This document shows positions 1-63,733 of a stretch of DNA of 64,000 nt, piece after piece. How positions within the stretch are numbered: the first letter of the stretch is position 1; the number at the start of each line of letters is the position of its first letter. Source of the stretch: Macrostomum lignano (taxonomy: Eukaryota); assembly GCA_002269645.1 (NCBI GenBank), contig NIVC01000931.1:62001-126000 (forward strand). The letters run 5' to 3'. Made by a program: the position numbers and the translations under genes. Under the pieces are notes generated by a model. The model saw nothing but the letters and a program-made list of their open reading frames with translations. It had not been told where the DNA came from and searched no databases.

Positions 1-222
1 ATGCTGAGCAGTGTGCCTGACTCTCCCAGTCTGCAGAGCTGTTTGATGCTGAGCAGTGTGCCTGACTCTCCCAGTCTGCAGAGCTGTTTGATGCTGAGCA
101 GTGTGCCTGACTCTCCCAGTCTGCAGAGCTGTTTGATGCTGAGCAGTGTGCCTGACTCTCCCAGTCTGCAGAGCTGTTTGATGCTGAGCAGTGTGCCTGA
201 CTCTCCCAGTCTGCAGAGCTGT
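1..222 (+). repeat. 45-bp minisatellite spanning an iGluR A splice acceptor
   Basis: Unit ATGCTGAGCAGTGTGCCTGACTCTCCCAGTCTGCAGAGCTGTTTG, 5 copies visible, truncated by the window start. Confidence 0.97.
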
Positions 223-3200
223 GTCGTCGCTGCCACCGGACGCTCACCTGCTGGCTGTATCGGGCTCGGGATTCCATCCGGCCCTGAACAGCTTCTGCCT
301 CGCCTTCAACGTCACCTGCATCTTCTTGGACGCACTGGAGGGCGAACGAGTCCCCGACGACTGGCTGCACAACGCCATCCGCTTCTTCCCGGCGCCAGAG
401 CTGCGCAGCCGATCGATTTCTGATTACGTCATTTGGTCGATGTGGGGAGAGTTTATCGTTTTCTACAGTAACTTTGACAGTGAGTTGGTCTCAAGGCTGG
501 GTGTCCCATTTTTCTATGCATGTTTGTGTTGCCCACTTTAAAACAAGTTCTCAATCACCCTCATCACAAATAAAAAAGCACATTTCACCCAACGCCCGAA
601 TAAAGACCTTGAAAAGGTGCAGACGCTGCTCAACTACCCGCTGGGGCCGGTGCTGTTTCGACCGCTGGACATGAGCAGGCCTAGTAAGGCGCTGTACCAG
701 CTGCACCGACTCAAACGGAGCACTCTGCACCGGTTTGTCGTGGACATGCCGATTCGTAGCCTGCCAAACTTCTTTAAATTGGTTAGTAAGAGATGCATTT
801 TATTATTTTCCACAGTGGCCGCAGTGCCTACTTATATAATATGCATAGTGAGGAGTTTGATATCTCGGAAGACAACACTATGCAATGCAGCGTTCCTCGA
901 TACTTATTTCCAGGCCAAAGCGGCGGGCCTCAACGGAATGGCGCACAGCTTCCTTCTGATTTCTGAGGTGGTAATTTTAGCAAAACAGTGTGCTCGCTTT
1001 GCAAGATTGCAACTGACATATAGCCGCCTGATTTCTGCTTTTAGTTGAGCGAAGCATTCTTTGGTCGTCACGTGGCGCCAAGGCTGAACAACGGAGTGAA
1101 TTTCACAACGCACCAACTAGGCGGCGTCCGGTTCATCGGCGAGAGCATCGATAGCGTTCGTGACTTTTTTCGAACCTTTCAAAGCCATGTTGCAAGGCCA
1201 TAGACACAAAACCATAGATTCAAGGCCATAGATGCAAAGCCATAGACACAAAACCATAGATTCAAGGCCATAGATGCAAAGCCATAGACACAAAACCATA
1301 GATTCAAGGCCATAGATGCAAAGCCATAGACACAAAACCATAGATTCAAGGCCATGTTGCAAGGCCATAGACACAAAACCATAGATACAAGGCCATAGAT
1401 GCAAGGCCTATATACACAATAGACACATAGACACTATATACACATAGACACAAAACCATAGATTCAAGGCCATAGATTCAAAGCCATAGACACAAAACCA
1501 TAGATTCAAGGCCATGTTGCAAGGCCATAGACACAAAACCATAGATACAAGGCCATAGATGCAAGGCCATAGACACAAAACCATAGATTCAATGCCATAG
1601 ATGCAAAGCCATAGACACAAAACCATAGATTCAAAGCCATGTTGCCAGGCCATAGACACAAAACCATAGATTCAAACAAAGCCATGTTGCAAGGCCATAG
1701 ACACAAAACCATAGACTCAATGCCATAGATGCAAGGCCATAGACACAAAACCATAGATTCAAAGCCATGTTGCAAGGCCATAGACACAAAACCATAGATT
1801 CAATGCCATAGATGCAAGGCCATAGACACAAAACCATAGATTCAAAGCCATGTTGCAGGGGGCCGTAGCCCAGCGGTCTAACGCAGGCTCTGGTGTGCCA
1901 GCGACCCAGGCTCGATTCCAAGTGCAGTCACATTAATTTGGGGCTGAATTGGAATCTCCGCTTGGCTCTGCTCATGCAATTAACGGCCTTGAGAGCCAAC
2001 CCCCCCAAGGCGCAGTGAAGTGTACATGCCTAGCTATAATATAAAGTTAGGGACGCTGTACACTCCTGTGTGAGTGTGTGCCTGCGTACGTATCCGCGCG
2101 CTTGTATGCCTGCTCAGGGGAGTCGGCGGAATGGGCAGTAATACCTCTCGCCGGTTGTGTGCCTATGTCGCTTAAAGTGCGCCAGGGTGCACACAACCCC
2201 GCTGCCTCTAATAAAAAAAGCCATGTTGCAAGGCCATAGACACAAAACCATAGATTCAAGGCCATAGATGCAAGGCCATAGATGTAAAGCCATAGACACA
2301 AAACCATAGATTCAAGGCCATAGATGTAAAGCCATAGACACAAAGCCATTAACTCCAAGCCCTCCCATTTCTTGCAGCCAACCCGATCTCGCGCTGAAGC
2401 CTTGGAACTTTTACTTGACGCTGCTTATGAAGCCTGGCGGACAGTCGCAGCTCCCATCGCTTTTACCGCTGAGAAAATCGGATTAGAAAGTTCGGTGCGG
2501 TGCCAGCCGCCTTTAACGACAAGAGTTGGAGAATTTCGACACGTTTTGGAGGTTGACTGATTTCGTCATTTATACCTCTGCTTCGATTTTTCGATTCAAT
2601 AGGTTGAGTTACAGCAAACGAACTATAAATCTGTACTTTGCTATTTTCAGAGCAAGATCCGAAATTGCCTTGGCGTTGTTCTACTCGACGGCGCGAAGTA
2701 CTACAACTTCTCCTTCGTCGTCAGGCACATGTCGCGGCACGAGGTTTGAGCACATTATCGATTAATCATGTGGCACATTCCCACACGGGGTAGGGCAACG
2801 TATGAGTGGGATTCAAAGTCAGGTAGTGGTAATCATTTCTGCTCTTATTTGATTGGACTGCGCTCCAAAATCCCGAAGTACATAGTTATGCAGACAGTTC
2901 AATCTTAACCGCTAGAATCCACAGATCTCCCGTGGTGACTTGTACTCAAAAACTCGGTGGCTACTCTTTATTAGCAACAGCTCTTACAAGTGAGCAGGTT
3001 CTCATGATATATCAATAGACTAGTCTGTTGGGATGTTGATGAAGTCACTCAGTCTTGTCGACTATCATGACTCTAACTCGTTTCTTTTTAATTAACGCTT
3101 CAAATTTCAGCTCGCCAACGGTTCGCGCCTGATTCAGAACATGAAGGCAAGTAAAATACTCGGTCTGGTAGTCTTGACAGGCATCAAAGTCTCGAATCAC

Positions 3201-6200
3201 ATTCGCGTACCCGATTGCAGTTTGCCGAATGGAATCTGGACAGAGGCTACCGGGTCACACGTGTCGGCTCCAACATGGAGGAGCAACATTACAAACGGTC
3301 CATGAGCGGCTTGAACCTCACTGTTGCCACTGTCATCGACCCGCCGTTTAGTCTGGAGAGGGACTTTGACGCAGTTGGCAATCGCCTGATAGGAAACCAA
3401 CGATGGACTGGCATGGCTATCGAATTGTTTAAGGAGGCCGCTAAACGACTGAAAATTTCGTGAGTTTGAACTCTTCCTTGAGTTCTTTTTTAACTTCCTT
3501 TTTAAGTACTAAACTCTAACTAATATTTAGGAAAACTCTGAACACCTTTACATGTACTCCCCACTCATTAATCATATGCAATACGGTACTTGACACCAGT
3601 CTTAAATCCACGAATTTATTCAGTTCGCGACCGCTCTTGAACTTTAAGCTTGACTCTTCAACACAAGTCAGCTACTTGACTTCCAGTGCACGCTCTCTCT
3701 TCAACACAAGTCAGCTACTTGACTTCCAGTGCACGCTCTCTTTTCAACACAAGTCAGCTACTTGACTTCCAGTGCACGCTCTCTTATCAACACAAGTCAG
3801 CTACTTGACTTCCAGTGCACGCTCTTTCATCAACACAAGTCAGCTACTTGACTTCCAGTGCACGCTCTCTCATCAACACAAGTCAGCTACTTGACTTCCA
3901 GTGCACGCTCTCTCTTCAACACAAGTCAGCTACTTGACTTCCAGTGCACGCTCTCTCATCAACACAAGTCAGCTACTTGACTTCCAGTGCACGCTCTCTC
4001 TTCAACACAAGTCAGCTATTTGACTTCCAGTGCACGCTCTTTCATCAACACAAGTCAGCTACTTGACTTCCAGTGCACGCTCTCTCATCAACACAAGTCA
4101 GCTACTTGACTTCCAGTGCACGCTCTCTCATCAACACAAGTCAGCTACTTGACTTCCAGTGCACGCTCTCTCTTCAACACAAGTCAGCTACTTGACTTCC
4201 AGTGCACGCTCTCTCTTCAACACAAGTCAGCCACTTGACTCTGTCGAACGCGTCAAATGTCAAAGGCACACTTAAATTAATCTCTACGTCTTCTTGTTTT
4301 CAGCTACACGATTCAAGTCAGCTCGGACGGTCAGTTTGGCAGTCCGAAGTTAAACGAAGCCGGCGAGCAGGTTTGGTCCGGAGCGATCGGCGATTTGATA
4401 TCCGGCACAGCCGATGTGGCCGTTGGCACTCTAGTTATCACTTACGATAGAGAGCGGGTGGGTGCCTACTCCAAGAACACACTACTCGAATAAGTAGTGC
4501 TACAAGTATCAAAACTATCTGAATAAATTACTCATCTACGCAGGTCGTGGACTTCACGACACCTTTCATGGGTCTCGGCCTGAGCGTGATCATGAAGAAG
4601 CCGGAGCAGCAGACCGACCCGCTCCAGTTCATGCTGCCCTTCAGCGGTCGCGTGTGGACCTGCATGCTGCTGGCCTGGCTGCTCACCAGCCTGCTCATGC
4701 TAGTGTGCGCCAGGCTGAGTCCCTACGAGTGGTACTCGCACAATGACTGCGTGCCAGTTGTGGAAAACCAGTTTGGTGCACTGAACAGCATGTGGTTCAC
4801 CATTGGCTCCCTGATGCAGCAGGGTGAGTGGCAGAATCCTATATGAGCCGCCCTTGGTCTGCCTGACACAGTGGTTGTTGGCTGTTGGGTATCCGGGTTT
4901 CACGTCGTGTTCTCTGGAGCGGGAGTCCGTGAAGCTCTCCATGCGAGACAGACTACTTGAACAAAAAGCCTTAGCGCTGTATGCAGAAACCAGTAAATGC
5001 TTAAAACCAGTTTTAACAGTTTTACTGTAAACAGTTTTAACCAGTAAAATAATTTTCTAAACAAGGAAGCCTTGCAGTTTTACGGAATTCTAACAAGTTT
5101 TATTGACTATTGACTATGTTTATACTTGGACTGCCTCCCTGATGCAAAGCGAAAAGCCGATATTAAGAATATATTGAACACTTCGAAACTCGAAAGAGGG
5201 GGAGGGAGAGTTAGAGGGGGAGAGAGAGGGACAGGAAGAGAGGGAGAGGGAGAGAAAGAGAGGGAGAGACAGGGGGACAGGGAGAGAGTGAGAGGGAGAG
5301 GGGGAGAGGGGAAGTGCAGGGAAGCTGGGGCGCTGGCTTGGGTAAAAATGAAGGTGAGAGGCGGGCCCACAGCTAAGCAGTTCAGCCAGTTTTGCTGCCT
5401 TCCCAGACAGAGCGGCACAGTGCAGCGACCTGATGCACAATCGTATTGGCCCTCATCAGTTCTTCCTACTTCGAAACCTCAGGATCCGAACTGGCGCCCA
5501 GGGCCTCATCGACGAGGATGGTTGCGACAACCTGGTGGTTCTTCACCCTGCTGCTCATCAGCTCCTACACGGCCAACCTGGCCGCTTTTCTCACCACCAG
5601 CCGGCTCGGCAACATCGACAGCGTGGAAGCGCTGGCCAGCCAGAGCAAAGTGAAGTTTGGTTGTCCTGTTGGCGGGGCCATGTACAACTTCTTCAAGGTA
5701 AATTGGACTGACAGGTGTGAGCAGTGTGCACCTTCATCCTTTATTTGCTGAAGTACTGCTCTCAGCAGCCGTATGATACATGTAGGTGCGGTATGCACAC
5801 TCTTCAAGGTTAATCAGATTGCTGGTTGGCACATCGAGCAATCAAAATCTCTTCCGGGTAGATTAGAAATACGTTTGTGAAGGAAATTACTGGTTCAAAA
5901 ATTGTAAAATCCAGATTTTAACACTGCGAAGCATTCAAGTCTGGTGCGTAATGCTTTTGTTCGCTTTCAGAATTCCCGAATCCCACTTTACCGAAGAATG
6001 TGGGATTCCATGGTTTCTTGGAGCGCTAAAAACGAGTCGTTTGTCCGGAAAACATCGGAAGGAATCGGCCGGGTTCGGGAGGGAGGCTACGCCTACATCC
6101 TTGAGTCCACGTTTAACCAGTACTATCGAGAGAGAGACTGCGAGCTCACGCAGATTGGAGGCATCTTCAATCCCAGCAGCTACGCGTTCGCAGTACCGCA

Positions 6201-7133
6201 GGGCAGTGAGTGATCCCGATCCCAGATCCCGATCCCAGATCCCGATCCCAGATCCCGATCCCAGATCCCGATCCCAGATGATCTGTGATCTGTGATCGAT
6301 ATTCCATTCTTTCTTTTTCTTTCTTTTTCAGACGCGTTTCTCAAGGAGGAGCTTGGTGAGGTCATTCTTCAGCTGCACAAGGAGCAGTTCATCGAGGATC
6401 TGTCGAATGCCTGGATCAAGCGGTTCAACCTGACCGGGCCGCCGTGCAGCGAAGCAGTGGACGATGCATCTCCGACCGGCACCATGGAAGTGGCATCCTT
6501 CGGGGGCGTCTTCATCGCCCTGATGATCGGACTTGGCGTGGCTGTCCTACTTTGTTTTGTCGAACTGCTATGGCGCTGTCGCACCCTGGCCCTGAGAACC
6601 CGGGTGAGCCTTCGGATGTTGTACCCATTGATCAAGGATATCAGGTGTTTTAAGTGCACCGAGTGTCAATGTATCGAGCATGCAAACTTTCACTCGAATT
6701 TCAGCGACCATTCCTGGACTTGCTAATTGAGCACCTTCGTTTGGCAACGAAGCTGAACATTAACCAGAAGGAGATGTCGCCTGCGCCGCCTCCCTGCGCC
6801 TGCGTCTCCAATGCCAACTGGGACGCATTGCCCCTAGAAACCGACCACAATGATAATATGGACGCAGACCAGGCCTTAGCAACCACAGTAGGCGCACTAG
6901 TAATGGAGCATCCAGCCATAGCAACCGAGTCTCCAGCCATAGCAACCGAGTCTCCAGCCATAGCAACCGTGTCTCCAGCCATAGCAACCGATTCTTCAGC
7001 CATAGCAACTGAGCCTCCAGCCATAGCAACCGTGTCTCCAGCCATACCAACCGTGTCTCCAGCCATAGCAACCGAGTCTTCAGCCATAGCAACCAAGTCT
7101 TCAGTCATAGCAACCGAGTCCCCAGGCTATTGA
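210..7133 (+). CDS. Ionotropic glutamate receptor-family subunit, paralog A (5'-partial, 13 exons in window, about 900 codons)
   Basis: Predicted exons: 210-479, 606-781, 914-967, 1045-1155, 2378-2551, 2651-2743, 3221-3459, 4304-4457, 4544-4823, 5483-5697, 5971-6205, 6332-6603, 6705-7133. All have AG/GT boundaries and compatible phases, and 10 of 13 have the same length as the matching exon of paralog B. Motifs: S1 NLTVATVIDPPF and [12 protein letters not shown]; pore [11 protein letters not shown]; M3 gate SYTANLAAF; S2 [12 protein letters not shown]; M4 FGGVFIALMIGLG. Confidence 0.93.
1181..2350. repeat. Composite GCCATAG-based minisatellite in an iGluR A intron, interrupted by the SINE
   Basis: Alternating subunits AAGGCCATAGACACAAAACCATAGATTC, AAGGCCATAGATGC and AAAGCCATGTTGC. 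Confidence 0.93.
1858..2216 (+). mobile_element. tRNA-derived SINE, full length (copy 1)
   Basis: A-box-like TAGCCCAGCGG (1866-1876), B-box-like GGCTCGATTCC (1909-1919), A-rich tail, and target-site duplication AAAGCCATGTTGCA (1844-1857 and 2217-2230). Two more copies in the window. Confidence 0.8.
3655..4235. repeat. 43-44-bp intronic minisatellite (about 14 copies)
   Basis: Unit TCAACACAAGTCAGCTACTTGACTTCCAGTGCACGCTCTCTC(T/A). Confidence 0.95.
5215..5464 (+). repeat. Dispersed repeat: GA-rich tract plus 156-bp unique segment (copy 1, iGluR A intron)
   Basis: 5309-5464 matches 22671-22826 with one mismatch seen. Confidence 0.85.
6212..6276. repeat. 13-bp repeat GATCCCGATCCCA, 5 copies, just after the S2-exon donor of iGluR A
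   Basis: Five exact units counted. Confidence 0.95.
6909..7125 (+). repeat. 21-bp repeat inside the last predicted exon of iGluR A (PAIATES x about 10)
   Basis: Unit CCAGCCATAGCAACCGAGTCT, in frame up to the stop at 7133. Confidence 0.9.
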
Positions 7134-9107: not shown

Positions 9108-14537
<5,430 letters not shown>

Positions 14538-15949: not shown

Positions 15950-16500
15950 GGGAGAAGGAGAGAGGAACGGGGGGAGACAGGAGAGGGAAGAGAAGTAGAG
16001 ATTGATCGGAGAGATGAGAGACTAGAGACGAGAGAGGAGAGAGGAGAGAGGAGAGAGGAGAGAGGAGAGAGGGTAGAGGAGAGGAGATAGGAGAGGGGAG
16101 AGAGGAGAGAGGAGATGGGAGAGAGGAGAGAGGAGAGAGGAGAGAGGGTAGAGGAGAGGAGATAGGAGAGGGGAGAGGGGAGAGAGGAGATGGGAGAGAG
16201 GAGAGAGGAGAGAGGGTAGAGGAGAGGAGATAGGAGAGGGAAGAGAGGAGAGAGGAGATGGGAGAGAGGAGAGAGGAGAGAGGAGAGGCGAGAGAGAGAG
16301 ACAGTAGGAGAGTGAGAGGGAGAGAGGGAGAGGGGAGAGGGAGAGAGGGAGAGGGGAGAGGGAGAGAGGGAGAGGGGGAGAGGGAGAGAGGGAGAGGGGG
16401 AGAGGGAGATAGAGAGACGGACCGGGAGAGATGGAGCGAAGAGAGTGGAGTGAGGAGATGGGAGAGAGAGAGTAGAGAGAAAGGGAGAGAGGAGAAGCTG
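15950..16500. repeat. GA-rich low-complexity tract
   Basis: Directly visible. Confidence 0.9.
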
Positions 16501-17089
16501 AGTATCATTTTAATGGTAAAATAAACTATTCGCATTTGAGTGAAATATCACTGCATTCTGAGCCAGCTCAAATAACTGACAGAAGTTTTGAATTTTAATA
16601 AAAATTGATGCAGAAAGTTGCCTGTCATTTGTATTAAAACAGAGAGACAGCCGTCAGCCGAAAGTTGTCTGAAAATGGCTCGTTTAGGAAAGTGCTTCTA
16701 CTCCAGTTTCTGGTTCTGAGTCTCCATGATTCGGCCTCCGGGGGGTCCTTATTGGCTGACTGCCAGCTCTGAAGATGAGGGGCAGCTTGGCGATTCGTTA
16801 AACTTACGGGAAAAATTACGAAGAGGAGAGAATGATAACAGCTAGAATTCTCATGGATGTGGGGGGGCAGCCGCCTTGATACCGGGATGAACCATATCAA
16901 TCAATATCCCCAGTCAGGACTGTTGGCTCCGAGCCAGCACCAGCGGAACTGAAAGCCAAGCATCGGAAACTGAGAGGCATCGAGTCCCAAAGCTGAAAAA
17001 GCGGTGGCTGAACCGGTGGGTCAGGGACTGCGCGAACCTTTTTGTGTGGTGAATAGGCGACATGGGGTAGAGAGGGGAGGATACAGGAA

Positions 17090-19080
17090 AAGGTAAATGG
17101 GAGAGGGAGAGGGGAGAGAGTAGAGGGGAGAGAGGAGAGAGGCCAGAGAGGAGAAGGGAGGATAGAGAGGAAAGCGGAGAGGGTAGAGTGGAGAGTGGAG
17201 AGGGGAGAGAGGAGAAAGAAGAGGGAAAAGGGGAGAGAGAAGAGGGGAGAGGAAAAAGGGGAGAGTGGAGAGGGAAAAGGGGAGAGAGAGGAGAGGGAAA
17301 AGGGGAGAGAGAAGAGGGGAGAGGAAAAAGGGGAGAGTGGAGAGGGAAAAGGGGAGAGAGAGGAGAGGGAAAAGGGGAGAGAGAAGATGGGAGAGAGGAG
17401 AGGATGGTGGAACAAAAACATGAGATATGAGAATGGATAAAAAATATGGGGAGAGGGAGATGGAAAAGGGGAGAGAGAGATGGAAAAGGGGAGAGGGAGA
17501 TGGAAAAGGGGAGAGGGAGATGGATAAGGGGAAAGGGAAATGGAAAAGGGGAGAGTGGAGAGGGAAAAGGGGAGAGAGAGGAGAGGGAAAAGGGGAGAGA
17601 GAAGATGGGAGAGAGGAGAGGATGGTGGAACAAAAACATGAGATATGAGAATGGATAAAAAATATGGGGGAGAGGGAGATGGAAAAGGGGAGAGAGAGAT
17701 GGAAAAGGGGAGAGGGAGATGGAAAAGGGGAGAGGGAGATGGATAAGGGGAAAGGGAAATGGAAAAGGGGAGAGTGGAGAGGGAAAAGGGAGAGAGAGGA
17801 GAGGGAAAAGGGGAGAGAGAAGATGGGAGAGAGGAGAGGATGGTGGAACAAAAACATGAGATATGAGAATGGATAAAAAATATGGGGGAGAGGGAGATGG
17901 AAAAGGGGAGAGAGAGATGGAAAAGGGGAGAGGGAGATGGAAAAGGGGAGAGGGAGATGGAAAAGGGGAAAGGGAAATGGAAAAGGGGAGAGTGGAGAGG
18001 GAAAAGGGGAGAGAGAGGAGAGGGAAAAGGGGAGAGAGAAGATGGGAGAGAGGAGAGGATGGTGGAACAAAAACATGAGATATGAGAATGGATAAAAAAT
18101 ATGGGGGAGAGGGAGATGGAAAAGGGGAGAGAGAGATGGAAAAGGGGAGAGGGAGATGGAAAAGGGGAGAGGGAGATGGAAAAGGGGAGAGAGAGATGGA
18201 AAAGGGGAGAGAGAGATGGAAAAGGGGAGAGAGAGATGGAAAAGGGGAGAGGGAGATGGAAAAGGGGAGAGGGAGATGGAAAAGGGGAGAGAGAGATGGA
18301 AAAGGGGAGAGGGAGATGGAAAAGGGGAGAGGGAGATGGAAAAGGGGAGAGAGAGATGGAAAAGGGGAGAGGGAGATGGAAAAGGGGAGATGGAGATGGA
18401 AAAGGGGAGAGGGAGATGGAAAAGGGGAGAGGGAGATGGAAAAGGGGAGAGGGAGATGGAAAAGGGGAAAGGGAAATGGAAAAGGGGAGAGTGGAGAGGG
18501 AAAAGGGGAGAGAGATGGAAAAGGGGAGAGAGAGATGGAAAAGGGGAGAGGGAGATGGAAAAGGGGAGAGGGAGATGGAAAAGGGGAGAGGGAGATGGAA
18601 AAGGGGAGAGGGAGATGGAAAAGGGGAGAGGGAGATGGAAAAGGGGAGAGAGAGATGGAAAAGGGGAGAGGGAGATGGAAAAGGGGAGAGGGAGATGGAA
18701 AAGGGGAGAGGGAGATGGAAAAGGGGAGAGGGAGATGGAAAAGGGGAGAGGGAGATGGAAAAGGGGAGAGGGAGATGGAAAAGGGGAGAGGGAGATGGAA
18801 AAGGGGAGAGGGAGATGGAAAAGGGGAGAGGGAGATGGAAAAGGGGAGAGGGAGATGGAAAAGGGGAGAGAGAGATGGAAAAGGGGAGAGGGAGATGGTA
18901 AAGGGGAGAGGGAGATGGAAAAGGGGAGAGGGAGATGGAAAAGGGGAGAGGGAGATGGAAAAGGGGAGAGGGAGATGGAAAAGGGGAGAGGGAGATGGAA
19001 AAGGGGAGAGGGAGATGGAAAAGGGGAGAGGGAGATGGAAAAGGGGAGAGGGAGATGGTAAAGGGGAGAGGGAGAGGAAA
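17090..19080. repeat. GA-rich 20-bp repeat GGGAGATGGAAAAGGGGAGA with a 218-220-bp higher-order block
   Basis: The unique insert GATGGTGGAACAAAAACATGAGATATGAGAATGG recurs near 17403, 17621, 17839 and 18059. Confidence 0.93.
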
Positions 19081-19509
19081 GAACAGAAGAATCGCTCACA
19101 CGAAGAGAAGCAGAGTTCGCACAAAGTTCAGCGGGGTTGCGATTGAAAAGCATAAAAACAATTCAGTTCCTTGATGGCGCGGGCGCCAGGAAACCGAAAC
19201 CGGAGCTACCAAAGAGTGACAGCTCGGGAGGATTTAGTAAAAAGTCTGCGCGGAGGCAGAGAAATCGGTCAGCAGCGATTCTCTAGCCCGCAATCCCAAG
19301 GCAAAACCTGTGCCAAGAATCACCTGGATGAGTCACCCAACTACCAGGAAGAGGCGCTTGAAGCAGAGAGCGAGAGCGAAAGATAACGGATTTTCGGCTC
19401 CATTAGCGGCGGTTTTCTTTGGAGTTTTTGCCCTGATTGCCTTCGAGTTTTTCGCGAACCCCTTCTCGCACTTTTTCGATCCTTCAGCTGATTTCGGCAC
19501 TTAAAAGGG

Positions 19510-20110
19510 GGCCACGAAGCCCCGATAGATTTGGCGCCACGAAGCCCCGATAGATTTGGCGCCACGAAGCCCCGATAGATTTGGCGCCACGAAGCCCCGA
19601 TAGATATGGCGCCACGAAGACTCGATAGATATGGCGCCACGAAGACTCGATAGATATGGCGCCACGAAGACTCGATAGATATGGCGCCACGAAGACTCGA
19701 TAGATTTGGCGCCACGAAGACTCGATAGATATGGCGCCACGAAGACTCGATAGATATGGCGCCACGAAGACTCGATAGATATGGCGTCACGAAGACTCGA
19801 TAGATTTGGCGCCACAAGGACCCAGTAGATTTGGCGCCACAAGGACCCAGTAGATTTGGCGCCACAAAGACCCAGTAGATTTGGCGCCACAAAGACCCAG
19901 TAGATTTGGCGCCACAAGGACCCAGTAGATTTGGCGCCACAAGGACCCAGTAGATTTGGCGTCACAAGGACCCAGTAGATTTGGCGCCACAAAGCCCCAA
20001 TAGATATCGCGCCACAAGGACCCAGTAGTTTTAGCGCCACAAAGACCCGATAGATATGGTGCCAAAGGACTCAGTAAATTTAGCGCCACGAAGACCCGAT
20101 AGATATGACG
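19510..20110. repeat. 25-bp minisatellite GCCACGAAGACTCGATAGATATGGC
   Basis: Directly visible, with zones of different variants. Confidence 0.93.
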
Positions 20111-20595
20111 CTTAAAGGACGCGCAGTATGCCGACTCAGATCCCGGAGACAACAACCCTAGCACTACTCGTAAACTTATAAAAAGGGGAGTCTTACCCTG
20201 ATAAAATAAAATCCCAAACTCACTACCTCCAGGCCACTCATGCAGAGTTGCAGACTTTATTTCCAGCTCATGGCCATTTAGCTGCGAATTGCAGAACCGC
20301 CAAATTATTCTGATAAGAATGAATAAATTAAATGACTTTTGGATTTTTGGATTTTTTGTTTTTTATTTGATTTTTGGATTATTTAATACTTCAGGCAAGG
20401 AATTAGCGAACGAAGATTGCTGGGAGGTTTTGCTAGCAGACAAATCTAGCCAAAACAGGTTATTAATTCAATAATCCAACTGTGGCCTACGTAATGGATT
20501 TCTAAGCCTAGAGATCTAGACTGGAAACTGTCGGAACATGAACCCCTGACTGTGGCCCTTAATGTGATAATCGTATGTGGCCTTCTCTAGGCTTT

Positions 20596-20906
20596 GCCCA
20601 CACCCTTAGTTTAGTCTATGGTTAAAGCATGTGGGGCTTTTCTGGGCTTTGCCCACACCCTTAGTTTAGTCTATGGTTAAAGCATGTGGGGCTTCTCAGG
20701 TATTTGCCCACACCCTTAGTTTAGTCTATGGTTAAAGTATGTGGGGCTTCTCAGGTCTTGGCCCACACCCTTAGTTTAGTCTATGGTTAAAGCATGTGGG
20801 GCTTTTCTGGGCTTTGCCCACACCCTTAGTTTAGTCTATGGTTAAAGCATGTGGGGCTTCTCAGGTCTTTTCCCACACCCTTAGTTTAGTCTATGGTTAA
20901 AGCATG
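20596..20906. repeat. 55-bp tandem repeat (about 6 copies) with inverted arms
   Basis: Period 55 (20596, 20651, 20706, 20761). Each unit has CCCACA...TGTGGG. Confidence 0.93.
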
Positions 20907-21474
20907 TGGTTGTTTCGCCCTCACACGCCACAGTAAGCAGCGCTTACTATCTGAACTCTTCCATTAGTCAGTTTCAAAGCCAGATATTAATGCCACGCAG
21001 TCCATGCTCTGGCGGCACCAATACGAGTCTAAAAAGTCTACAAAGTCTACAGCAGTATAGTCGAGCTGCTTGCTGCCAAGGGTTCGGGGCAATTATAACC
21101 TTCTATCAGCCAAAAAACTAATTGCTTGCTCGGTTGTTGGGAAACTTGTTGCCAACCAAACCTGCTGTTAGGAGCAGGTCTCCCAACTGGCCAACCAGAC
21201 TGCTTGACCCTCGGATACGGCCCCTTGTTTTGTACAGGTTAAGGTGTACCTGAGGGCAGACATGTAACAGCAAACTTTATACTCGGATTTATTTGCGACT
21301 AAGTGTAAAGTGCTACTGGATACGCTAGTATTTTCTTGGCTGCATAATGCAAAAAAGTGTAATATTCTTTTGTAATTACACTTTGAACTTGGCTAGAGCT
21401 CAGGCCACATAACTGTGACTCGTACCTACATTATTAATTGCATAAATATGTGGACTTGTGTAAGCCATTTAGGT

Positions 21475-22826
21475 AGATAGAGAGGGAGAGAAAGAGGAAG
21501 TGAGAGATAGAGAGGGACAGGGAGAAGTGAGAGGGAGAGGGAGAGAGGCGAGCAGGGAGAGAGGGAGAGGGAGAGAGAGAGAGGGTGAGATAGAGAGAGA
21601 GAGGGTGAGAAAGAGAGAGAGAGAGGGGGACAGGGAGAGAGGGGGACAGGGAGAGAGGGGGACAGGGAGAGAGGGGGACAGGGAGAGAGGGGGACAGGGA
21701 GAGAGGGGGACAGGGAGAGAGGGGGACAGGGAGAGAGGGAGACAGGGAGAGAGGGGGACAGGGAGAGAGGGGGACAGGGAGAGAGGGGGACAGGGAGAGA
21801 GGGGGACAGGGAGAGAGGGGGACAGGGAGAGAGGGGGACAGGGAGAGAGGGGGACAGGGAGAGAGGGAGAGGGTGAGAAAGAGAGGGAGAGAGGGGGACA
21901 GGTAGAGAGGGAGAGGGTGAGAAAGAAAGGGAGAGAGGGGACAGGGAGAGAGTGAGAGGGAGAGAGGGGAACAGGGAGAGAGTGAGAGGGAGAGAGGGGG
22001 ACAGGGAGAGAGGGAGAGGGAGAGAGGGGACAGGGAGAGAGTGAGAGGGAGAGAGGGGACAGGGAGAGAGTGAGAGGGAGAGAGGGGGACAGGGAGAGAG
22101 TGAGAGGGAGAGAGGGGGACAGGGAGAGAGGGAGAGGGAGAGAGGGGACAGGGAGAGAGTGAGAGGGAGAGAGGGGACAGGGAGAGAGAGAGAGGGAGAG
22201 AGGGGACAGGGAGAGAGGAGACAGGGAGAGAGGGGACAGGGAGAGAGTAAGAGGGAGAGAGGGGACAGGGAGAGAGGGGACAGGGAGAGAGTGAGAGGGA
22301 GAGAGGGGGACAGGGAGATAGTGAGAGGGAGAGAGGGGACAGGGAGAGAGTGAGAGGGAGAGAGTAAGAGGGAGAGAGGGGACAGGGAGAGAGTGAGAGG
22401 GAGAGAGGGGACAGGGAGAGAGGGGGACAGGGAGAGAGTGAGAGGGAGAGAGGGGACAGGGAGAGAGGGGACAGGGAGAGAGGGGGACAGGGAGAGAGGG
22501 GGACAGGGAGAGAGGGGACAGGGAGAGAGGGGACAGGGAGAGAGGGGGACAGGGAGAGAGTGAGAAGGAGAGAGGGGACAGGGAGAGAGGGGACAGGGAG
22601 AGAGGGAGAGGGTGAGAAAGAGAGGGACTGAGGGGACAGGGGGAGAGGGAGAGGGAAAGGGAGAGGGAGAGGGAAGTGCAGGGAAGCTGGGGCGCTGGCT
22701 TGGGTAAAAATGAAGGTGAGAGGCGGGCCCGCAGCTAAGCAGTTCAGCCAGTTTTGCTGCCTTCCCAGACAGAGCGGCACAGTGCAGCGACCTGATGCAC
22801 AATCGTATTGGCCCTCATCAGTTCTT
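21475..22826 (+). repeat. Dispersed repeat copy 2, with GA-rich (GGGACAGGGAGAGA-type) head expanded to about 1.2 kb
   Basis: Purine-rich array 21475-22670 followed by the same 156-bp segment as 5309-5464. Confidence 0.85.
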
Positions 22827-25025: not shown

Positions 25026-28000
25026 ATGGCTGATCTCAGCAAATTCGACCAGGGTCTGGTGGCCGAGTACAGGGAAGCATTCGCTCTGTTTGACAAAGAC
25101 GGTGAGTTCTGATGCGATCTAGGCATGATCTATATGCGATTTGGGCATGATCTATATGCGATTTGGGCATGATCTATATGCGATTTGGGCATGCTCTATA
25201 TATGCGATCTAGGCATGATCTATATGCGATTTGGGCATGATCTATATGCGATTTAGGCATGCTCTATATATGCGATCTAGGCATGATCTATATGCGATCT
25301 AGGCATGATCTATATGCGATTTGGGCATGATCTGTATGCGATTTAGGCATGCTCTATATATGCGATCTAGGCATGATCTATATGCGATTTGGGCATGATC
25401 TATATGCGATTTAGGCATGCTCTATATATGCGATCTAGGCATGATCTATATGCGATCTAGGCATGATCTATATGCGATTTAGGCATGCTCTATATATGCG
25501 ATCTAGGCATGATCTATATGCGATCTAGGCATGATCTATATGCGATCTAGGCATGATCTATATGCGATTTAGGCATGATCTATATGCGATCTAGGCATGA
25601 TCTATATGCGATCTAGGCATGATCTATATGCGATCTAGGCATGATCTATATGCGATTTAGGCATGATCTATATGCGATCTAGGCATGATCTATATGCGAT
25701 CTAGGCATGATCTATATGCGGTCTAGGCATGATCTATATGCGATCTAGGCATGATCTATATGCAAAAAACAACAACAGAGTACGCTGCCAGATCACAAAA
25801 GCAGCGTCAGATGGCGCGCTTCCAAGCTTGGGCGCGAACAAAAGCCGCACCGCCGACAGAGTCCGGGGCGCCGGCGTCAGCCAGCAGACAGTCGACGTAG
25901 CGCCGAGTCCTCGCCTGTCCCCGCCGGTAGGGTGCCTGCAACGTAAGTAGCAGCACCTCCTGCACCGGCTCCGGGCAGTAGGCCTCGGCGCGGATGGCGT
26001 GGCCTGCCAGCTGGAGTCGCCGACGGCGCAGCAGATCGCTAGGACGGGCCAGGCCGGCGCGATGATAGAGCGCCGTGTTGGTGACTCGCTCGTTGCCGAT
26101 CTTGAAGGCGGCGCGCAGCAGGCCAGCGTGCGCCGCGTCGACTTGAGCCTCGAGCGAGTCTGTCAGCGTCCAGGTCTCGGCGTTGTATAACAGGACGGTC
26201 TCGATCACCGCCTGGAACAGCGCCGCCCTCTGGCGGTCCGGTAGGGCCTCGGACTGCAGGACTGACCTTATAGAACGAAAGGCAGCCCAAGCAAGTCCTC
26301 GGCGACGCCGCAGATCCTCGCGGACGTCGGGAACCAGACCGCCGAGGTAGACGAACTGCTGACATCTTGGAAGCTCACTCGCCTGTCCGTCAGCGCCTCG
26401 GCAGAAGATTGCAGCCTCGGTGTCGTCCGGCACGCATAGCACGACGGTCTTCTGCGTGTTGACCACCAGGCCGACGCTCGCCGCAACGGCAACCAGCCTA
26501 TCCAGCTGTCGTTGGGCGCCCTCGACGGTCGAGGACAGCAGGGCGAGGTCATCGGCGTAGCCAAGCACGCTGAGCCGTCTCTCCGGTTGGCGTCGACCCA
26601 CGCGTCGCCGCAGCAGGAAGCCGTCGTCGTTGGAAGGCAGAGCCTATAGGTCATCTATATGCGATCTAGGCATGATCTATATGCGATCTAGGCATGATCT
26701 ATATGCGATCTAGGCATGATCTATATGCGATCTAGGCATGATCTATATGCGATCTAGGCATGATCTATATGCGATCTAGGCATGATCTATATGCGATTTG
26801 GGCATGATCTATATGCGATTTGGGCATGATCTATATGCGATTTGGGCATGATCTATATGCGATTTAGGCATGCTCTATATACGCGATCTAGGCATGATCT
26901 ATATGCGATTTGGGCATGATCTATATGCCATCTAGCAAAACCGTGTCTCCTCTACCAGTGTCCTGACGGTGTCCTAAACCGTCTTATAAAATGTGAGCAG
27001 TGATTGAAAAAAGTCCCTTGAAAAACTCTTCGCAATCGTCATGCACTCCCAAGACAGCTCATTGTACACTGCGCAAGTAGAACGCCGTGCAAGACAACAG
27101 TGAGTATTATTCTTCATTCACAGCTCAAGTTTTATTGCTAGTGAAAGAAGGCTGTAAAACGTGGGCCACGGTGCTGAGTTCAAGTGTTTTCTGAGTGAGG
27201 CGCTTCTAAAATACTACGCATTAATCTGAAACATCATCATAAATGAATCCAGAATGCATTTAGTTCGAGGTGAAAGAAAGTAAAGTTCCAATTTGTCGCT
27301 CTCCAATGATACGTTCTCAAACTTTTTAAAACGAACTTTGGAATGAGAAAGCTCTTGGAATGAGAGAGCAGACTCTCGCCTGACTCTCGCCTGACTCTCG
27401 CCTGACTCTCGCTTGACTCTTGCCTGACTCTCAGCTGACTCTCAGCTGACTCTCATCTGACTCTCACCTGACTCTCACCTGACTCTCGCCTGACTCTCAC
27501 CTGACTCTCGCCTGACTCTCGCCTGACTCTCGCCTGACTCTCGCCTGACTCTCGCTTGACTCTCGCCTGACTCTCGCCTGACTCTTGCCTGACTCTCGCC
27601 TGACTCTCGCCTGACTCTCATCTGACTCTCATCTGACTCTCGCCTGACTCTCAGCTGACTTTCATCTGACTCTCGCCTGACTCTCACCTGACTCTTGCCT
27701 GACTCTCGCCTGACTCTCGCCTGACTCTCGCCTGACTCTTGCCTGACTCTCGCTTGACTCTTGCCTGACTCTCGCCTGACTCTCAGCTGACTCTCGCCTC
27801 GCCTGACTCTCGCTTGACTCTTTCCTGACTCTCACCTGACTCTCGCCTGACTCTCAGCTGACTCTCATCTGACTCTCATCTGACTCTCGCCTGAATCTCG
27901 CCTGACTCTCAGCTGACTCTCATCTGACTCTCGCCTGACTCTCGCCTGACTCTCGCTTGACTCTTGCCTGACTCTCACCTGACTCTCAGCTGACTCTCAT

Positions 28001-35010: not shown

Positions 35011-36823
35011 CCGCGGCGACTTTTCCCCATTCATCGCCGCGTGCTCGAAAACAAACGTGACTGAGCGCTCATTTTCTCTCTGAGTCTCCCGCTGTTTCAC
35101 TTTGCTGTTTTTTACGCTTGCACAGCAGATTAACGAAGCCAAATAAGGCAGTGCTGGCGAACTAACTGAATATTTATATGCATAATTTCACTAAAAATAG
35201 CCAGTTTGAGGGCTGCTGTAGATCCGGACTGCGTAGCGCATTCTGAGACTAAACTTAGCAATAAGTTCAGATTCAGCTAACGCCTTGATTTGTGCTTGGC
35301 TAGACTAGCAATCCATTCTATTCCTGCATCCTTGTGGGCTAGATTAGCAATCCATTCTATTACTGCATCCATGTATTGGCTAGATTAGCAATCCATTCTA
35401 TTCCTGCATCCATGAATTGGCTAGATTAGCAATCCATTCTATTCCTGCACCCATGTATTGGCTAGATTAGCAATCCATTCTATTCCTGCATCCATGCATT
35501 GGCTAGATTAGCAATCCATTCTATTCCTGCACCCATGCATTGGCTAGATTAGCAATCCATTCTATTCCTGCATCCATGCATTGGCTAGATTAGCAATCCA
35601 TTCTATTCCTGCATCCGTGTATTGGCTAGATTAGCAATCCATTCTATTCCTGCATCCATGCATTGGCTAGATTAGCAATCCATTCTATTCCTGCACCCAT
35701 GTATTGGCTAGATTAGCAATCCATTCTATTCCTGCATCCGTGTATTGGCTAGATTAGCAATCCATTCTATTCCTGCATCCGTGTACACATGTATTGGCTA
35801 GATTAGCAATCCATTCTATTCCTGCATCCGTGTATTGGCTAGATTAGCAATCCATTCTATTCCTGCATCCATGCATTGGCTAGATTAGCAATCCATTCTA
35901 TTTCTGCATCCGTGTATTGGCTAGATTAGCAATCCATTCTATTTCTGCATCCGTGTATTGGCTAGATTAGCAATCCATTCTATTTCTGCATCCGTGTATT
36001 GGCTAGATTAGCAATCCATTCTAGCTCGTATTCCTGCACCCATGCATTGGCTAGATTAGCAATCCATTCTATTCCTGCATCCGTGTATTGGCTAGATTAG
36101 CAATCCATTCTATTTCTGCATCCGTGTATTGGCTAGATTAGCAATCCATTCTATTCCTGCATCCGTGTATTGGCTAGATTAGCAATCCATTCTATTCCTG
36201 CATCCGTGTATTGGCTAGATTAGCAATCCATTCTATTCCTGCATCCATGCATTGGCTAGATTAGCAATCCATTCTATTCCTGCACCCATATATTGGCTAG
36301 ATTAGCAATCCATTCTATTCCTGCATCCATGCATTGGCTAGATTAGCAATCCATTCTATTCCTGCATCCATGTATTGGCTAGATTAGCAATCCATTCTAT
36401 TCCTGCACCCATGAATTGGCTAGATTAGCAATCCATTCTATTCCTGCATCCGTGTATTGGCTAGATTAGCAATCCATTCTATTCCTGCACCCATGAATTG
36501 GCTAGATTAGCAATCCATTCTATTCCTGCACCCATGAATTGGCTAGATTAGCAATCCATTCTATTCCTGCATCCGTGTATTGGCTAGATTAGCAATCCAT
36601 TCTATTCCTGCACCCATGAATTGGCTAGATTAGCAATCCATTCTATTCCTGCATCCGTGTATTGGCTAGATTAGCAATCCATTCTATTCCTGCATCCATG
36701 TATTGACTAGATTAGCAATCCATTCTATTCCTGCATCCGTGTATTGGCTAGATTAGCAATCCATTCTATTCCTGCACCCATGAATTGGCTAGATTAGCAA
36801 TCCATTCTATTCCTGCATCCGTG

Positions 36824-39800
36824 TGTAGTGATTGACGCGAGAGACAGAAGTTTAGATGAACCAAAAGCTTACAGCCCCGACTTGGGCGTGGGGTGCTATT
36901 ATATATTTGAGCTCAAAGCTCTGTAATCGATTGCTCTAGAGTAAGTGTACATCTATGATGCAATGTACACAGGAGTTAAAATCAACGTGCCGAGAAAGGG
37001 GGGGGCAGAGTACAACATCTTTCCCCTTCACGGAGATTAACGGATTAAAAAAAAATGAATGTCATGCGCAAAAAAAGCAAAAAGAGGTTTATAGGTTCGT
37101 CAGTTTTGCACGAAAAAAATCAGGTCCTATAATTGGGATGCGGTAGTTTGCAGCTTCTTGGATGCGGACGGTTCGCGATTGGCAGCTCCCCCGCACCGGC
37201 GGCGGCCGGCGGCTCCGCGGGGCCGAAGCGGCCGTCGGGTCGCCTTCTGGACTGCCGGTCTCGTCTGGTCCGTCTCCTGTTGGCCGCTCTGGCAGTCGCT
37301 TAACGTCGCTGGCGTGGCGCATGCAGTTGCTGCCGCCCATGCTCTCCAGGATGACAGAATCGCCTTTGACCTCCGTGACTGTCCAAGGCTGAATTTCAAA
37401 TGGCGTATCCGTTTTCGATGGCTGGATTTTTCTGCGGAGGACTTTATCGCCAGCTTGGATGCGATGCTCTGCGGCTGATCTTGTCGCGTCGGCGTAGTGC
37501 TTCATGGCGGCTTTGTACTGACGGTCTCTGTTCCTGACCGTCTTTGCTGCAGCCTGCGGCTTGACTCCTGGAATGCAGTCTTGGACTGGTCTCCCGAACA
37601 TCAGGTCGGCTGGGGCGACTCCTTGTGGCCGTGTGCGGAGTGCTGCGGTACGCGGCGAGCCACTCCTGCAATGCCGTCCTCCAGTCGGTTCCTTGGGCGT
37701 TGGAGATGCGGAGCAGCTTGTTCAGGGACCTGTTGATTCGCTCGGTAATGCCATTGGCCTCGGGATGGTACGGTGTGATGCGCCGGTGGCTGATTCCGTG
37801 GCTTGTGACGAAACTCCTGAAGGCTTCTGATGTGAATGTCGGACCGTTGTCCGTCACGATTTGCTGGGGAATCCCGAAGGTCGCGAAGACCTGCTGTAAC
37901 TGTCTGGTGGTGCGGTCAGCTGTGATCGACTTCATCGCCACGACGATGGGGTAGCGCGAGTAGTGGTCTATGATCACCAGGAAATGTCGACCGTTGGCAG
38001 GTCCAAGAAAGTCGATGCCGATAGTGGACCAGGCAGACTCTGGCAGCTCAGTCGGTTGCAGTGGGGCTGCCGAAACTTCCGCTTGATGGTTAGTGGCCGC
38101 ACATTCCAGGCACTGTGCCACCAGTTGCTTGGCCTCAGCTGACATTCCGGGCCACCAGACCTTGGAGTTGAGTCGGCGCAGTGTTTTGGTCTCGCCTTGA
38201 TGTCCTTGATGAGCCAGCTGCAGGACAACGGGCCGCTGGGCTTTTGGGATTACCAATCTTTGGTCTCGCAGCAGAACGCCAGAAGCCTCGGTCAACTCGT
38301 GCCTGGCGGCGTGCAGTCGTCGGATGCTGTCGTCCCGCAGATCCCAATTGCCTGTTCTCAACGATGACAGCACAGTCGATAGAATGGCATCACGGGCCGT
38401 GGCTTCCCGGACTTGCTGCAGGGACAGGCCTCTCGGCGTCGCCGCTTGCGCGATGCTGCCGATGAAGTTTGTGTCCAGGATCTCGCCGATGTTGATCGAT
38501 GTCGGAGCGGGCTCTGGCTGCCGGCTGAGGATGTCGCTCGGGTTGAACGGGCCTGGCCGATAGATGACGCTGAACTGCATGTCCTGGATGCTGAGCGCCA
38601 TGCGCTCGATGCGTGGAGGTGGGCGCGAGCCGGGCTTGAGCATGAAGGTCAGCGGCTTGTGGTCGGTGACGACAGTAAAGTTGGCGGCGCCGCTGAGATA
38701 GTGTCGAAATTTCAGGCAGTCGAACTTGATTGCGAGAGCCTCCCGTTCCGTCTGTGAGTACCTCGACTCGACTGCCGATAGGGCTCTGCTTGCGAATGCA
38801 ACCGGCTTGGATGAGCCGTCGGACTGAATCTGGCAAAGAATGGCGCCGAGTCCGATGGGGCTGGCGTCGACAACGAGTTCGGTATGCCGGTGCTTGTCGA
38901 AGAAGACCAGTGTGCTGTCGACTGCGATGCGATCTCGGACTTCTTGAAAAGCCTTGGCCTGCTGCTCGCCCCACTGCCAGCTTGCACTCTTCTTGGTCAG
39001 GTCCCGCAACGGCTTCGTCATGTCCGCCAGGCCTGGCATGAAGCGACTGACAAACGTAACCAGACCGAGGAAGGAGCGGACTTCCGAGGCGTTCGTTGGC
39101 TCTTTGAAGCTTTTGATCGCCGACACCTTGGCTTCAGCTGGCTGGATCCCTTTTGCCGACAGTCGCATGGCCAGGAAGTTGACCTCCGGCACCGCAAATT
39201 TGCACTTGGACGGGTTGAGAGTCAGGCCGTGTCCCTGAAGACGCTGAAGGCAGCTGACTAGGCGACTGTTGTGCTCCTGGATGTCCCGGGCATACACAAT
39301 GATGTCGTCGTGCACCCATCTCACTCCTGGCAGGCCGCTGAGTACTGTAGACATCACACGCTGTAGAATTTCTGAAGCCGACGTGAAACCCATACAGAGG
39401 CGCGTGAGCCTCATTAAGCCCAGTGGTGTCGAGAAGGTCAGAAACTTGCGTGACTCCTGATCGACCTTGATTTGGTGAAAGGCTTTATTGATGTCTAGCT
39501 CCGAGAAGAAGTGTGAACCGGCCATTTCGTCTGTGACCTCTTCAAAGGTCGGAATCGGCTGCTTCTCCGGCACTACGTATTGATTGAGGTCTCGAAGGTC
39601 TTGGGTGATTCGCACCTGGTTCGGATTGCTTTTTGGTACCACTACCATTCTAGCGACCCATTCGGAAGGCTCAGATACTCGCTCGATGATGCCTTCGCTG
39701 AGCTGGGCGTCGAGCTCTTTGATGGCTGCGTCTCGTAGGTGGATTGGCACTCGGCTAGGCGGGTGGCACACTGGGATAGCGTTGTCCTTGAGTCGGATGC

Positions 39801-62800: not shown

Positions 62801-63733
62801 AGCGCCGTGGGCACTCATTTTAGCGCCGTGGGCACTCATTTTAGCGCCGTGGGCACTCATCTTAGCGCCGTGGGCACTCATCTTAGCGCCGTGGACACTC
62901 ATTTTAGCGCCGTGGGCACTCATTTTAGTGCAGCAGGCACTCATTTTAGCGCCGTGGGCACTCATTTTAGCGCCGTGGGCACTCATTTTAGCGCCGTGGG
63001 CACTCATTTTAGCGCCGTGGGCACTCATTTTAGCGCCGTGGGCACTCATTTTAGCGCCGTGGGCACTCATTTTAGCGCCGCAGGCACTCATTTTAGCGCC
63101 GCAGGCACTCATTTTAGCGCCGTGGGCACTCATTTTAGCGCCGCAGGCACTCATTTTAGCGCCGTGGGCACTCATTTTAGCGCCGTGGGCACTCATTTTA
63201 GCGCCGTGTGCACTCATTTTAGCGCCGCAGGCACTCATTTTAGCGCCGCAGGCACTCATTGTAGCGCCGCGGGCACTCATTTTAGCGCTGCAGGCAGTCA
63301 TTTTGGCGCCCTGAAGCAAAATTATTGATTTCAATAACGGGCCACAAGGTTGGGTGGGGGTGGGGGGACAAAGCATTGGCATGTCCCCCATAGCTTTTAC
63401 TGGGGGGGGGGGCATGTCCCCCTGTCCATCCGGTGGGACGCCCCTGGCAATGGCCACGTCGAACTCGATGCAATTATAGGATCTGCAGCCAATGCTCACC
63501 TCATCCAGCAAGTACATCATGCTCCTTGGATCCGGGATGTAGCCGTGTAGGAAGGCCTTCTTGATAAGCCGCGACGCCCACACCAGCGGCACCCAGTACT
63601 CGCACTCGTACCTACGGCCGTACGTAGCCTTAAACTGGTCGGCCAGGCGCTGGAATGCTCCGATTTCAGAATTGGTGATCATCTTGGTGAAGTTTAGCCG
63701 CACCACCGGGTCAGAATTCAGGTTTTTCAGCAT
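56808..63733 (-). CDS. Bestrophin-family anion channel, 3' half (gene continues beyond the window)
   Basis: Exons about 63733-63500 (EYWVPLVWASRLIKKA; acceptor uncertain), 59427-59353 (VDKMRNQMHTLVIYNDVMIPLVYTQ), 58426-58148 (VVIIAVYSYF...GWLKVAMCVMNPFGDDDEDF...YNLE), 57374-56808 (ISRRSASADEM... low-complexity tail). IPLVYTQV and NPFGxDDxDF are bestrophin hallmarks. All junctions are phase 0. Confidence 0.9.
57412..58091. repeat. 11-bp perfect repeat GATGCTAACGC in a bestrophin intron
   Basis: Directly visible, about 61 units. Confidence 0.98.
59628..63310. repeat. 21-bp satellite GGCACTCATTTTAGCGCCGTG (about 175 units) with higher-order structure, in a bestrophin intron
   Basis: Directly visible; explains three ORFs longer than 1100 aa. 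Confidence 0.98.

Follow-up and report, generated by a model that had tools for sequence, protein, structure and literature searches.

Background

How can two genes that have drifted far apart at silent sites be almost identical over stretches of a few hundred nucleotides that cross exon-intron borders? The question is raised by 64,000 nucleotides of the genome of Macrostomum lignano, a flatworm model with a tandem-repeat-dominated genome (GenBank assembly GCA_002269645.1, contig NIVC01000931.1, positions 62,001 to 126,000 of the forward strand; this whole stretch is hereafter referred to as the window, and positions are counted from its first nucleotide). The window carries two paralogous kainate-type ionotropic glutamate receptor (iGluR) genes in inverted orientation, gene A (217-6603, forward strand) and gene B (45208-51814, reverse strand). 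A preliminary reading of the letters without database searches (the sequence-only reading) had attributed their patchwork of near-identical and diverged segments to non-allelic gene conversion. The computational analysis described here leads to the same answer: non-allelic (interlocus) gene conversion between old inverted paralogs is very probably the best explanation of the mosaic, with silent divergence low inside four short tracts and high to saturated elsewhere in the genes.

Two colinear receptor genes in inverted orientation

Eleven exons (E1-E11) were modelled in gene A, at 217-479, 606-781, 914-967, 1045-1155, 2651-2743, 3221-3459, 4304-4457, 4544-4823, 5483-5697, 5971-6205 and 6332-6603, and eleven in gene B, at 51814-51552, 51482-51307, 51220-51167, 51008-50898, 49864-49763, 48731-48493, 48256-48103, 48019-47740, 47015-46801, 46690-46456 and 45479-45208. 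The two sets are colinear and the exons are of equal length in 10 of the 11 pairs, AG/GT is found at every splice junction of both genes, and the open frames amount to 697 amino acids in A and 700 in B. The model of A begins downstream of one or more 5' exons that lie beyond the window edge; C-terminal exons were left undefined, no similarity between A and B being detectable downstream of exon 11. The two genes are convergent, tail to tail, with the ends of their exons 11 placed 38.6 kb apart.

Both proteins match the Pfam families Lig_chan, Lig_chan-Glu_bd and SBP_bac_3, with scores above the thresholds (135-136 bits for Lig_chan and 98-104 bits for Lig_chan-Glu_bd). For B, the best solved relative is GluK2 (B residues 220-694 against GluK2 386-848, E 1e-102), and the alignment with GluK2 assigns the end of S1, M1 and M2, including MQQG, to exon 8, M3 with SYTANLAAF to exon 9, most of S2 to exon 10, and the end of S2 with M4 to exon 11. 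A protein query made from the conserved blocks returned M. lignano predictions that are 86-87% identical; next came kainate-type receptors from other animals, with identities near 45%. Three of the M. lignano predictions (P0001, P0002 and P0004), all of them frameshift-ridden, correspond to A residue for residue, and P0001 extends past A into the 9.6-15.7 kb region of the window. The N-terminal part of about 260 amino acids gave no Pfam match to ANF_receptor in either protein and shows weak colinear matches only, to the M. lignano iGluR prediction P0024 (E 0.019) and to a stretch of the GluK2 amino-terminal domain (ATD; 1.7 bits, insignificant); judged from sequence, ATD is a plausible label for this region. 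Both genes appear to be functional, since their frames are intact, their splice sites are canonical and, in the diverged exons, the ratio of nonsynonymous to synonymous divergence (dN/dS) stays under 1, at 0.15 to 0.5.

Four near-identical tracts across exon-intron borders

Comparison of the window with itself in inverted orientation yielded six short matching blocks, all inside the two genes: A 1-484 with B 52030-51547 (93.2%), A 1889-2219 with B 49268-48939 (94.3%), A 4299-4933 with B 48261-47630 (85.8%), A 5474-5738 with B 47024-46760 (96.6%), A 5989-6279 with B 46672-46382 (97.3%) and A 6212-6609 with B 45623-45202 (74%). One of these, the second, is a dispersed repeat that is described below. 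At the resolution of single nucleotides, four tracts were delimited, each lying over an exon-intron border, in which A and B are 97-100% identical and the synonymous divergence (dS) is 0-0.18, whereas the exons outside the tracts are 50-77% identical.

Tract 0 (A 1-410, forward; B 51621-52277, reverse) comprises a 45-bp tandem array, the acceptor site of E1 and the 5' part of this exon. The array occupies 1-222 in A, where it is cut by the start of the window, and 51809-52277 in B (10.4 units), and the 4.9 units seen in A are the last five units of B. Positions 1-237 are identical, seven mismatches are crowded into 238-277 and four are scattered over 278-410; thus 11 mismatches are found in the part of E1 at 217-410 (about 190 nucleotides).

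Most of exon 8 and a part of intron 8 constitute tract 1 (A 4577-4941, forward; B 47338-47986, reverse), which in B is split by a 272-nucleotide insertion at 47358-47629 that resembles a short interspersed nuclear element (SINE). A 4577-4830 is the exact reverse complement of B 47986-47733, a maximal exact match of 254 nucleotides that includes the first 7 nucleotides of the intron. It is followed by 111 intronic nucleotides with four mismatches (4831, 4898, 4900 and 4920), and the tract reaches 4941 rather than 4933 once the insertion in B is excised. Tract 2 (A 5503-5738, forward; B 46760-46995, reverse) begins at nucleotide 21 of exon 9, contains M3 with SYTANLAAF and runs through the first 41 nucleotides of intron 9, which are identical, to an abrupt stop at 5738; its four differences (5607, 5658, 5661 and 5667) are all synonymous. 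Tract 3 (A 5998-6279, forward; B 45557-46663, reverse) begins at nucleotide 28 of exon 10, in S2, and includes the donor site and a 13-bp array of the unit GATCCCGATCCCA, present in about 5 copies in A and in 69 copies in B (45557-46449). It holds five differences, three of them synonymous and two nonsynonymous.

Downstream intron is therefore carried in tracts 1, 2 and 3 (111, 41 and at least 74 nucleotides, respectively, at 96-100% identity), the 45-bp and the 13-bp arrays stand at homologous positions in the two genes, and divergence at silent and intronic sites within the tracts amounts to 0-4%. These results bear out the sequence-only reading at the level of single tracts: its identity of 254 nucleotides is reproduced to the base, and its further statements, namely that similarity continues for about 100 nucleotides into the following intron, that the M3 exon with about 40 nucleotides of intron differs at a few synonymous sites, that most of the S2 exon and the 13-bp repeat are common to A and B, and that the 45-bp array is shared together with about the first 200 nucleotides of the N-terminal exon, agree with the differences counted above.

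The edges of the tracts share a geometry. Tracts 1-3 each start 20-33 nucleotides inside an exon, the 5' end of the exon in front of them being fully diverged, and comprise the 3' part of the exon and the proximal part of the downstream intron; their edges do not coincide with domain boundaries. The diverged patches that separate them are short, with 5 of 13 nucleotides mismatched at the start of exon 9 and 13 of 25 at the start of exon 10.

At third codon positions, the GC content of the tracts (0.68-0.87) somewhat exceeds that of the other segments (0.58-0.80). This excess was considered as a sign of biased conversion and discounted, being too confounded with exon conservation.

Ancient divergence outside the tracts

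The divergence between A and B was measured per segment as dS by the method of Nei and Gojobori, a check proposed in the sequence-only reading, and was found to be strongly non-uniform along the genes. In E1, dS is 0.18 for 218-406 and 0.70 for 407-478. It amounts to 1.29 in E2 and 1.98 in E3, is saturated in E4, returns to 1.37 in E5, ranges from 1.46 to saturation in E6 and is 0.72 in E7. Within E8 the first 11 codons stand at 1.59 and the other 82 at 0; the first 6 codons of E9 and the first 9 of E10 are saturated, while the remainders of these exons give 0.09 and 0.07, respectively; and E11 gives 1.24. Along the third codon positions of exons 7-11, the longest identical run is 84 positions, a length that was reached in none of 100,000 shuffles (shuffle maximum 58).

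At the protein level, the N-terminal exons are 34-67% identical between A and B. The divergence that had been pointed out for the other exons is well illustrated by exon E4, in which LSEAFFGRHVAPRL in the protein of one copy faces a diverged counterpart at 39% amino-acid identity, while exon 11, which carries M4, retains 70%. Introns outside the tracts, most of which had been described as unalignable, do not align any better than shuffles do; for intron 7 the score is 0.566, and its shuffles give 0.534.

An insertion in tract 1 and a dispersed repeat

The 272-nucleotide insertion of B (47358-47629, reverse strand) lies in intron 8, inside tract 1, and A lacks it. It is bordered by a perfect 12-nucleotide target-site duplication, GGAGTCCGTGAA, at 47630-47641 and 47346-47357, and past it a further 8 nucleotides match A; the insertion thus arose within sequence already common to A and B. 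The target-site duplication, a motif resembling a tRNA T-arm (GGTTCGATTC) and an (ATT)n-like tail suggest a 5'-truncated SINE, and screens of the insertion for tRNA genes (ARAGORN) and RNA families (Rfam) were both negative.

The block that pairs A 1889-2219 with B 49268-48939 was considered as a fifth tract and rejected. It belongs to a dispersed repeat of about 330 nucleotides, present in three copies in the window (1889-2219, forward; 48939-49268, reverse; 10185-10421, forward), the identity being 94% between the copies of A and B and 82% for the third. Independent insertions, and not conversion, account for the pair, since the sequence is conserved in all three frames, a third copy exists, and the repeat lies in intron 4 of A and in intron 5 of B.

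Gene conversion and its alternatives

Under gene conversion, A and B would have diverged to saturation at silent sites, after which short stretches of one gene overwrote the other. A DNA break in one copy would be repaired, with no crossover, from the sequence of its paralog, and at least four tracts of at least 237 to 365 nucleotides would have been produced in this way, presumably by several events rather than one. In established models of conversion, slowly evolving segments of diverging duplicates keep pairing and drifted segments escape; similarly, the most conserved exons of A and B may have stayed similar enough to pair and so to keep converting, and exons that had drifted past the pairing threshold would have escaped. 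A crossover between inverted copies would merely invert the spacer, while conversion leaves the locus intact. The proposal of the sequence-only reading is supported by the contrast between dS of 0-0.18 inside the tracts and of 0.7 to saturation outside them, by the crossing of exon-intron borders and by the flanking introns that cannot be aligned. The tracts have not been static since, as their private differences and the SINE-like insertion in tract 1 show that A and B have evolved separately since conversion; the counts of differences in the tracts are too small to separate one burst from several events.

Because the tracts carry intron sequence and tandem arrays, their near-identity resides in the DNA itself and does not stem from constraint on the proteins. 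An ancient constraint acting on the nucleotides themselves, such as exon-intron RNA duplexes edited by ADAR or elements of splicing control, would meet this point, and the Q/R editing sites of vertebrate AMPA and kainate receptors provide a precedent for exon-plus-intron conservation with ADAR duplexes; moreover, tract 1 spans the M2 codons MQQG, aligned to the Q/R position of GluK2, together with about 118 nucleotides of downstream intron. It is nevertheless extremely improbable here. In predicted RNA folds, the three exon-intron tracts do not exceed shuffled sequences in stability (z = +0.38, +0.13 and -1.49) and form no exon-intron duplex at the QQ codons, and such a constraint would neither keep the 45-bp and 13-bp arrays alike unit for unit nor leave the adjoining 11 codons of exon 8 at a dS of 1.59. 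A recent duplication was rejected because the remaining parts of the genes and their introns are ancient, and reciprocal exchange because it swaps segments without equalising them. A large palindrome was likewise considered and rejected, since the flanks and the spacer share nothing and long, near-identical inverted arms are missing. A single replacement over about 4577-6280, whether by renewed partial duplication in recent time or by one extended conversion, with the interiors of the introns later scrambled by indels and repeat turnover, is very improbable. It would suit the adjacency of tracts 1-3, their common polarity and their similarly low divergence (0-4%), and introns in this region do gain insertions and arrays fast; but in the patches of 13-25 nucleotides that open exons 9 and 10, 38-52% of positions are mismatched, synonymous sites included, which is too much to have accumulated since a recent event, several hundred nucleotides of mutually unalignable intron lie between the tracts in both copies, and tract 0 is more than 4 kb away, beyond fully diverged exons.

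That the tracts are an artefact of assembly or polishing, the reads of one paralog having corrected the other or a local collapse or chimeric consensus having formed, is judged very improbable, although several circumstances would favour it. The window is highly repetitive (46% tandem repeat), earlier gene predictions of M. lignano are full of frameshifts, B is without an independent record over the exons of tracts 1-3, and polishing with short reads could erase the last differences, so that the perfect 254 nucleotides may overstate the true identity. Cross-mapping, however, requires prior near-identity and the flanks are saturated; it could therefore have sharpened the tracts but not created them. 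Private differences have been kept in every tract (11 in tract 0, 4 in tract 1, 4 in tract 2 and 5 in tract 3), correction by copy and paste would not have spared the B-only insertion of 272 nucleotides with its target-site duplication, the frames and splice sites of both genes are flawless over the tract edges, and in P0208, an independent M. lignano prediction, B-type variants are found again in the exon 1 part of tract 0.

Several observations weigh against the conversion reading all the same. Queried as protein, B exons 6-11 brought up only A-like predictions of M. lignano (75-77% identity), exact look-ups of open reading frames (ORFs) for A exon 8, B exon 8 and B exon 10 all came back empty, and the exons of tracts 1-3 have no B-like counterpart among recorded proteins or contigs. 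The searches found no relatives between the M. lignano matches and the generic kainate receptors at about 45%, nor any orthologs from sister species. The sole independent trace of B is P0208, a mis-fused UniProt prediction from another assembly that was found with the diverged N-terminal half of B as query and in which a bestrophin exon (58133-58570 in the window) is fused to an exon 1 with B-type variants; this mis-prediction happens to confirm the bestrophin-B gene order in a second assembly. Finally, a simple conversion model leaves the geometry of tracts 1-3 unexplained, as these end abruptly 41 to more than 118 nucleotides into the intron with no homology beyond.

One way to account for that geometry, proposed here as a conjecture with a small chance of being correct, is that the conversions were recurrent, polar and one-sided repair events seeded by breaks in intronic tandem arrays. 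Candidate break sites would be the two arrays of the tracts, of which the 45-bp one precedes exon 1 and the 13-bp one follows exon 10, and in A also the GA-rich repeat of intron 8. Homology would be anchored in a conserved exon, synthesis would run into the intron of the donor, and the far end would be sealed by end joining. Such repair would explain why tracts 1-3 start 20-33 nucleotides inside exons and stop abruptly in non-homologous intron, as well as the presence of an array in two of the four; the one-sided, array-break character of the repair is itself conjectural. If it holds, the satellite-rich genome of M. lignano would offer a natural case of tandem repeats as drivers of concerted evolution in adjoining exons.

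The GA-rich repeat of intron 8 (GGGAGA-type, 5180-5310) is of the same family as arrays at 15951-22674, with 75-90% identity.

In terms of receptor domains, the pattern is less tidy than the sequence-only reading had it, namely a homogenised channel core with divergent extracellular parts. The exons of M1-M3 are indeed homogenised, but the M4 exon is not (dS 1.24, 70% amino-acid identity). Divergence of the extracellular parts, with the ATD, S1 and the tails said to diversify, fits neither the extracellular S2 exon, which is homogenised, nor the first N-terminal exon, half of which is homogenised as well. The claim that pore and gate evolve in concert has to be qualified too, since the tract edges follow the geometry of the DNA and not domain borders, and the starts of the exons are diverged. 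As a weaker addition to the array-break conjecture, selection might preserve the identity of M1-M3 and S2 if A and B are subunits of a common tetramer.

Relation to known systems and significance

Interlocus conversion is well known from the inverted duplicates Hsp70Aa/Ab and Amy-p/Amy-d of Drosophila, the gamma-globin genes of primates, and the red/green opsin and RHD/RHCE genes of humans. A and B resemble these textbook cases in being old paralogs in which short near-identical tracts form a mosaic regardless of exon-intron borders, in their heterogeneous silent divergence and in the escape of diverged exons; as in the inverted duplicates among them, the copies are inverted and the locus is left intact after conversion without crossover. 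They differ in the flatworm host, in encoding kainate-type iGluRs, in the association of tracts with intronic arrays and in the common polarity of the tracts. The palindromes of the human Y chromosome, the arms of which undergo intrachromosomal conversion with each other, are likewise inverted copies on one chromosome that are homogenised by conversion; unlike them, A and B lack long identical arms, their similarity being confined to a few hundred nucleotides inside genes with the rest saturated or unalignable. In vertebrate GRIA2 and GRIK genes an ultraconserved exon-plus-intron cassette holds the Q/R editing site and its intronic editing complementary sequence. The receptor family, the M2 exon and an identity that reaches into the downstream intron are features in common with these cassettes, whereas A and B show no predicted duplex, are paralogs of one genome and not orthologs, and include arrays in their tracts.

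The closest precedent by superfamily comes from the ionotropic receptors (IRs) of Drosophila, which are members of the iGluR superfamily and among the orthogroups of which conversion was detected with GENECONV (PMC4122928). Paralog fragments exceed the gene-wide level of similarity there as they do here. In that study conversion was inferred statistically from coding alignments and treated as a nuisance factor for birth-death rates, whereas the tracts of A and B are seen directly, intron included, and in canonical kainate-type receptors. A literature search on conversion in iGluRs of Macrostomum found nothing. The process itself is well known, inverted pairs included; A and B are an unusually clean and directly visible flatworm example of it, useful rather than surprising.

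The mosaic has consequences for the use of these genes. Gene trees, ortholog assignments and duplication dates derived from the M1-M3 and S2 region make A and B look very recent, while the other exons show them to be ancient. The two subunits have an identical pore (M1, M2 and M3) and most of the ligand-binding lobe S2 in common and are unlike in S1, M4 and the N-terminal region. As a pair of natural chimeras, they lend themselves to separating the parts that determine gating from those that determine specificity for ligand or assembly.

Further observations on genes A and B

The 45-bp unit of tract 0 repeats the exon 1 acceptor (CTCTCCCAGTCTGCAG/AGCTGT, the stroke marking the splice site), which gives 5 candidate acceptors in A and 10 in B. 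Each unit contains a TGA in the frame of exon 1; therefore, only the last acceptor can be productive. With this TGA in every unit and no in-frame start visible upstream, the idea of exon 1 as a trans-spliced first exon was set aside. A candidate first coding exon of B was recognised at 52774-52886 (reverse strand), with a signal-peptide-like start and a GT donor in the phase needed by exon 1. If this candidate is real, the 45-bp array would be situated in an intron 0 of B, and the N-terminal domain of B would be about 100 amino acids shorter than that of GluK2.

In the protein of exon 11 (6332-6603 in A, 45208-45479 in B), the next paralog of M. lignano, P0095, is nearer to B than to A, and B shares with it residues such as NV.LRD, ILKL, TGTLDV and CFIEL. 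On account of this proximity, A seems to be the faster-evolving copy in exon 11.

Other features of the window

Tandem repeats make up about 46% of the 64 kb and form 35 arrays, their periods ranging from 4 to 250 bp; among them is a 3.7-kb array of a 21-bp satellite at 59647-63310. An apparently intact gag-pol ORF of Ty3/gypsy type (37447-41166, reverse strand, 1,240 amino acids) encodes zinc knuckle, protease, reverse transcriptase, RNase H and integrase domains. The same 41-bp satellite is found on both of its sides (35296-36824 and 41382-43736); either the element was inserted into the satellite or the arrays belong to the ends of the element. Upstream of gene B lies an exon of the bestrophin family (56811-58570, reverse strand; Pfam Bestrophin, E 4.5e-25). 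A reverse-transcriptase fragment with a YADD motif, resembling a long interspersed nuclear element (LINE), occupies 25810-26643 on the reverse strand. Residues 266-320 of the iGluR prediction P0024 match 25813-25977 at 73%, because of which P0024 probably contains a piece of this LINE-like repeat.

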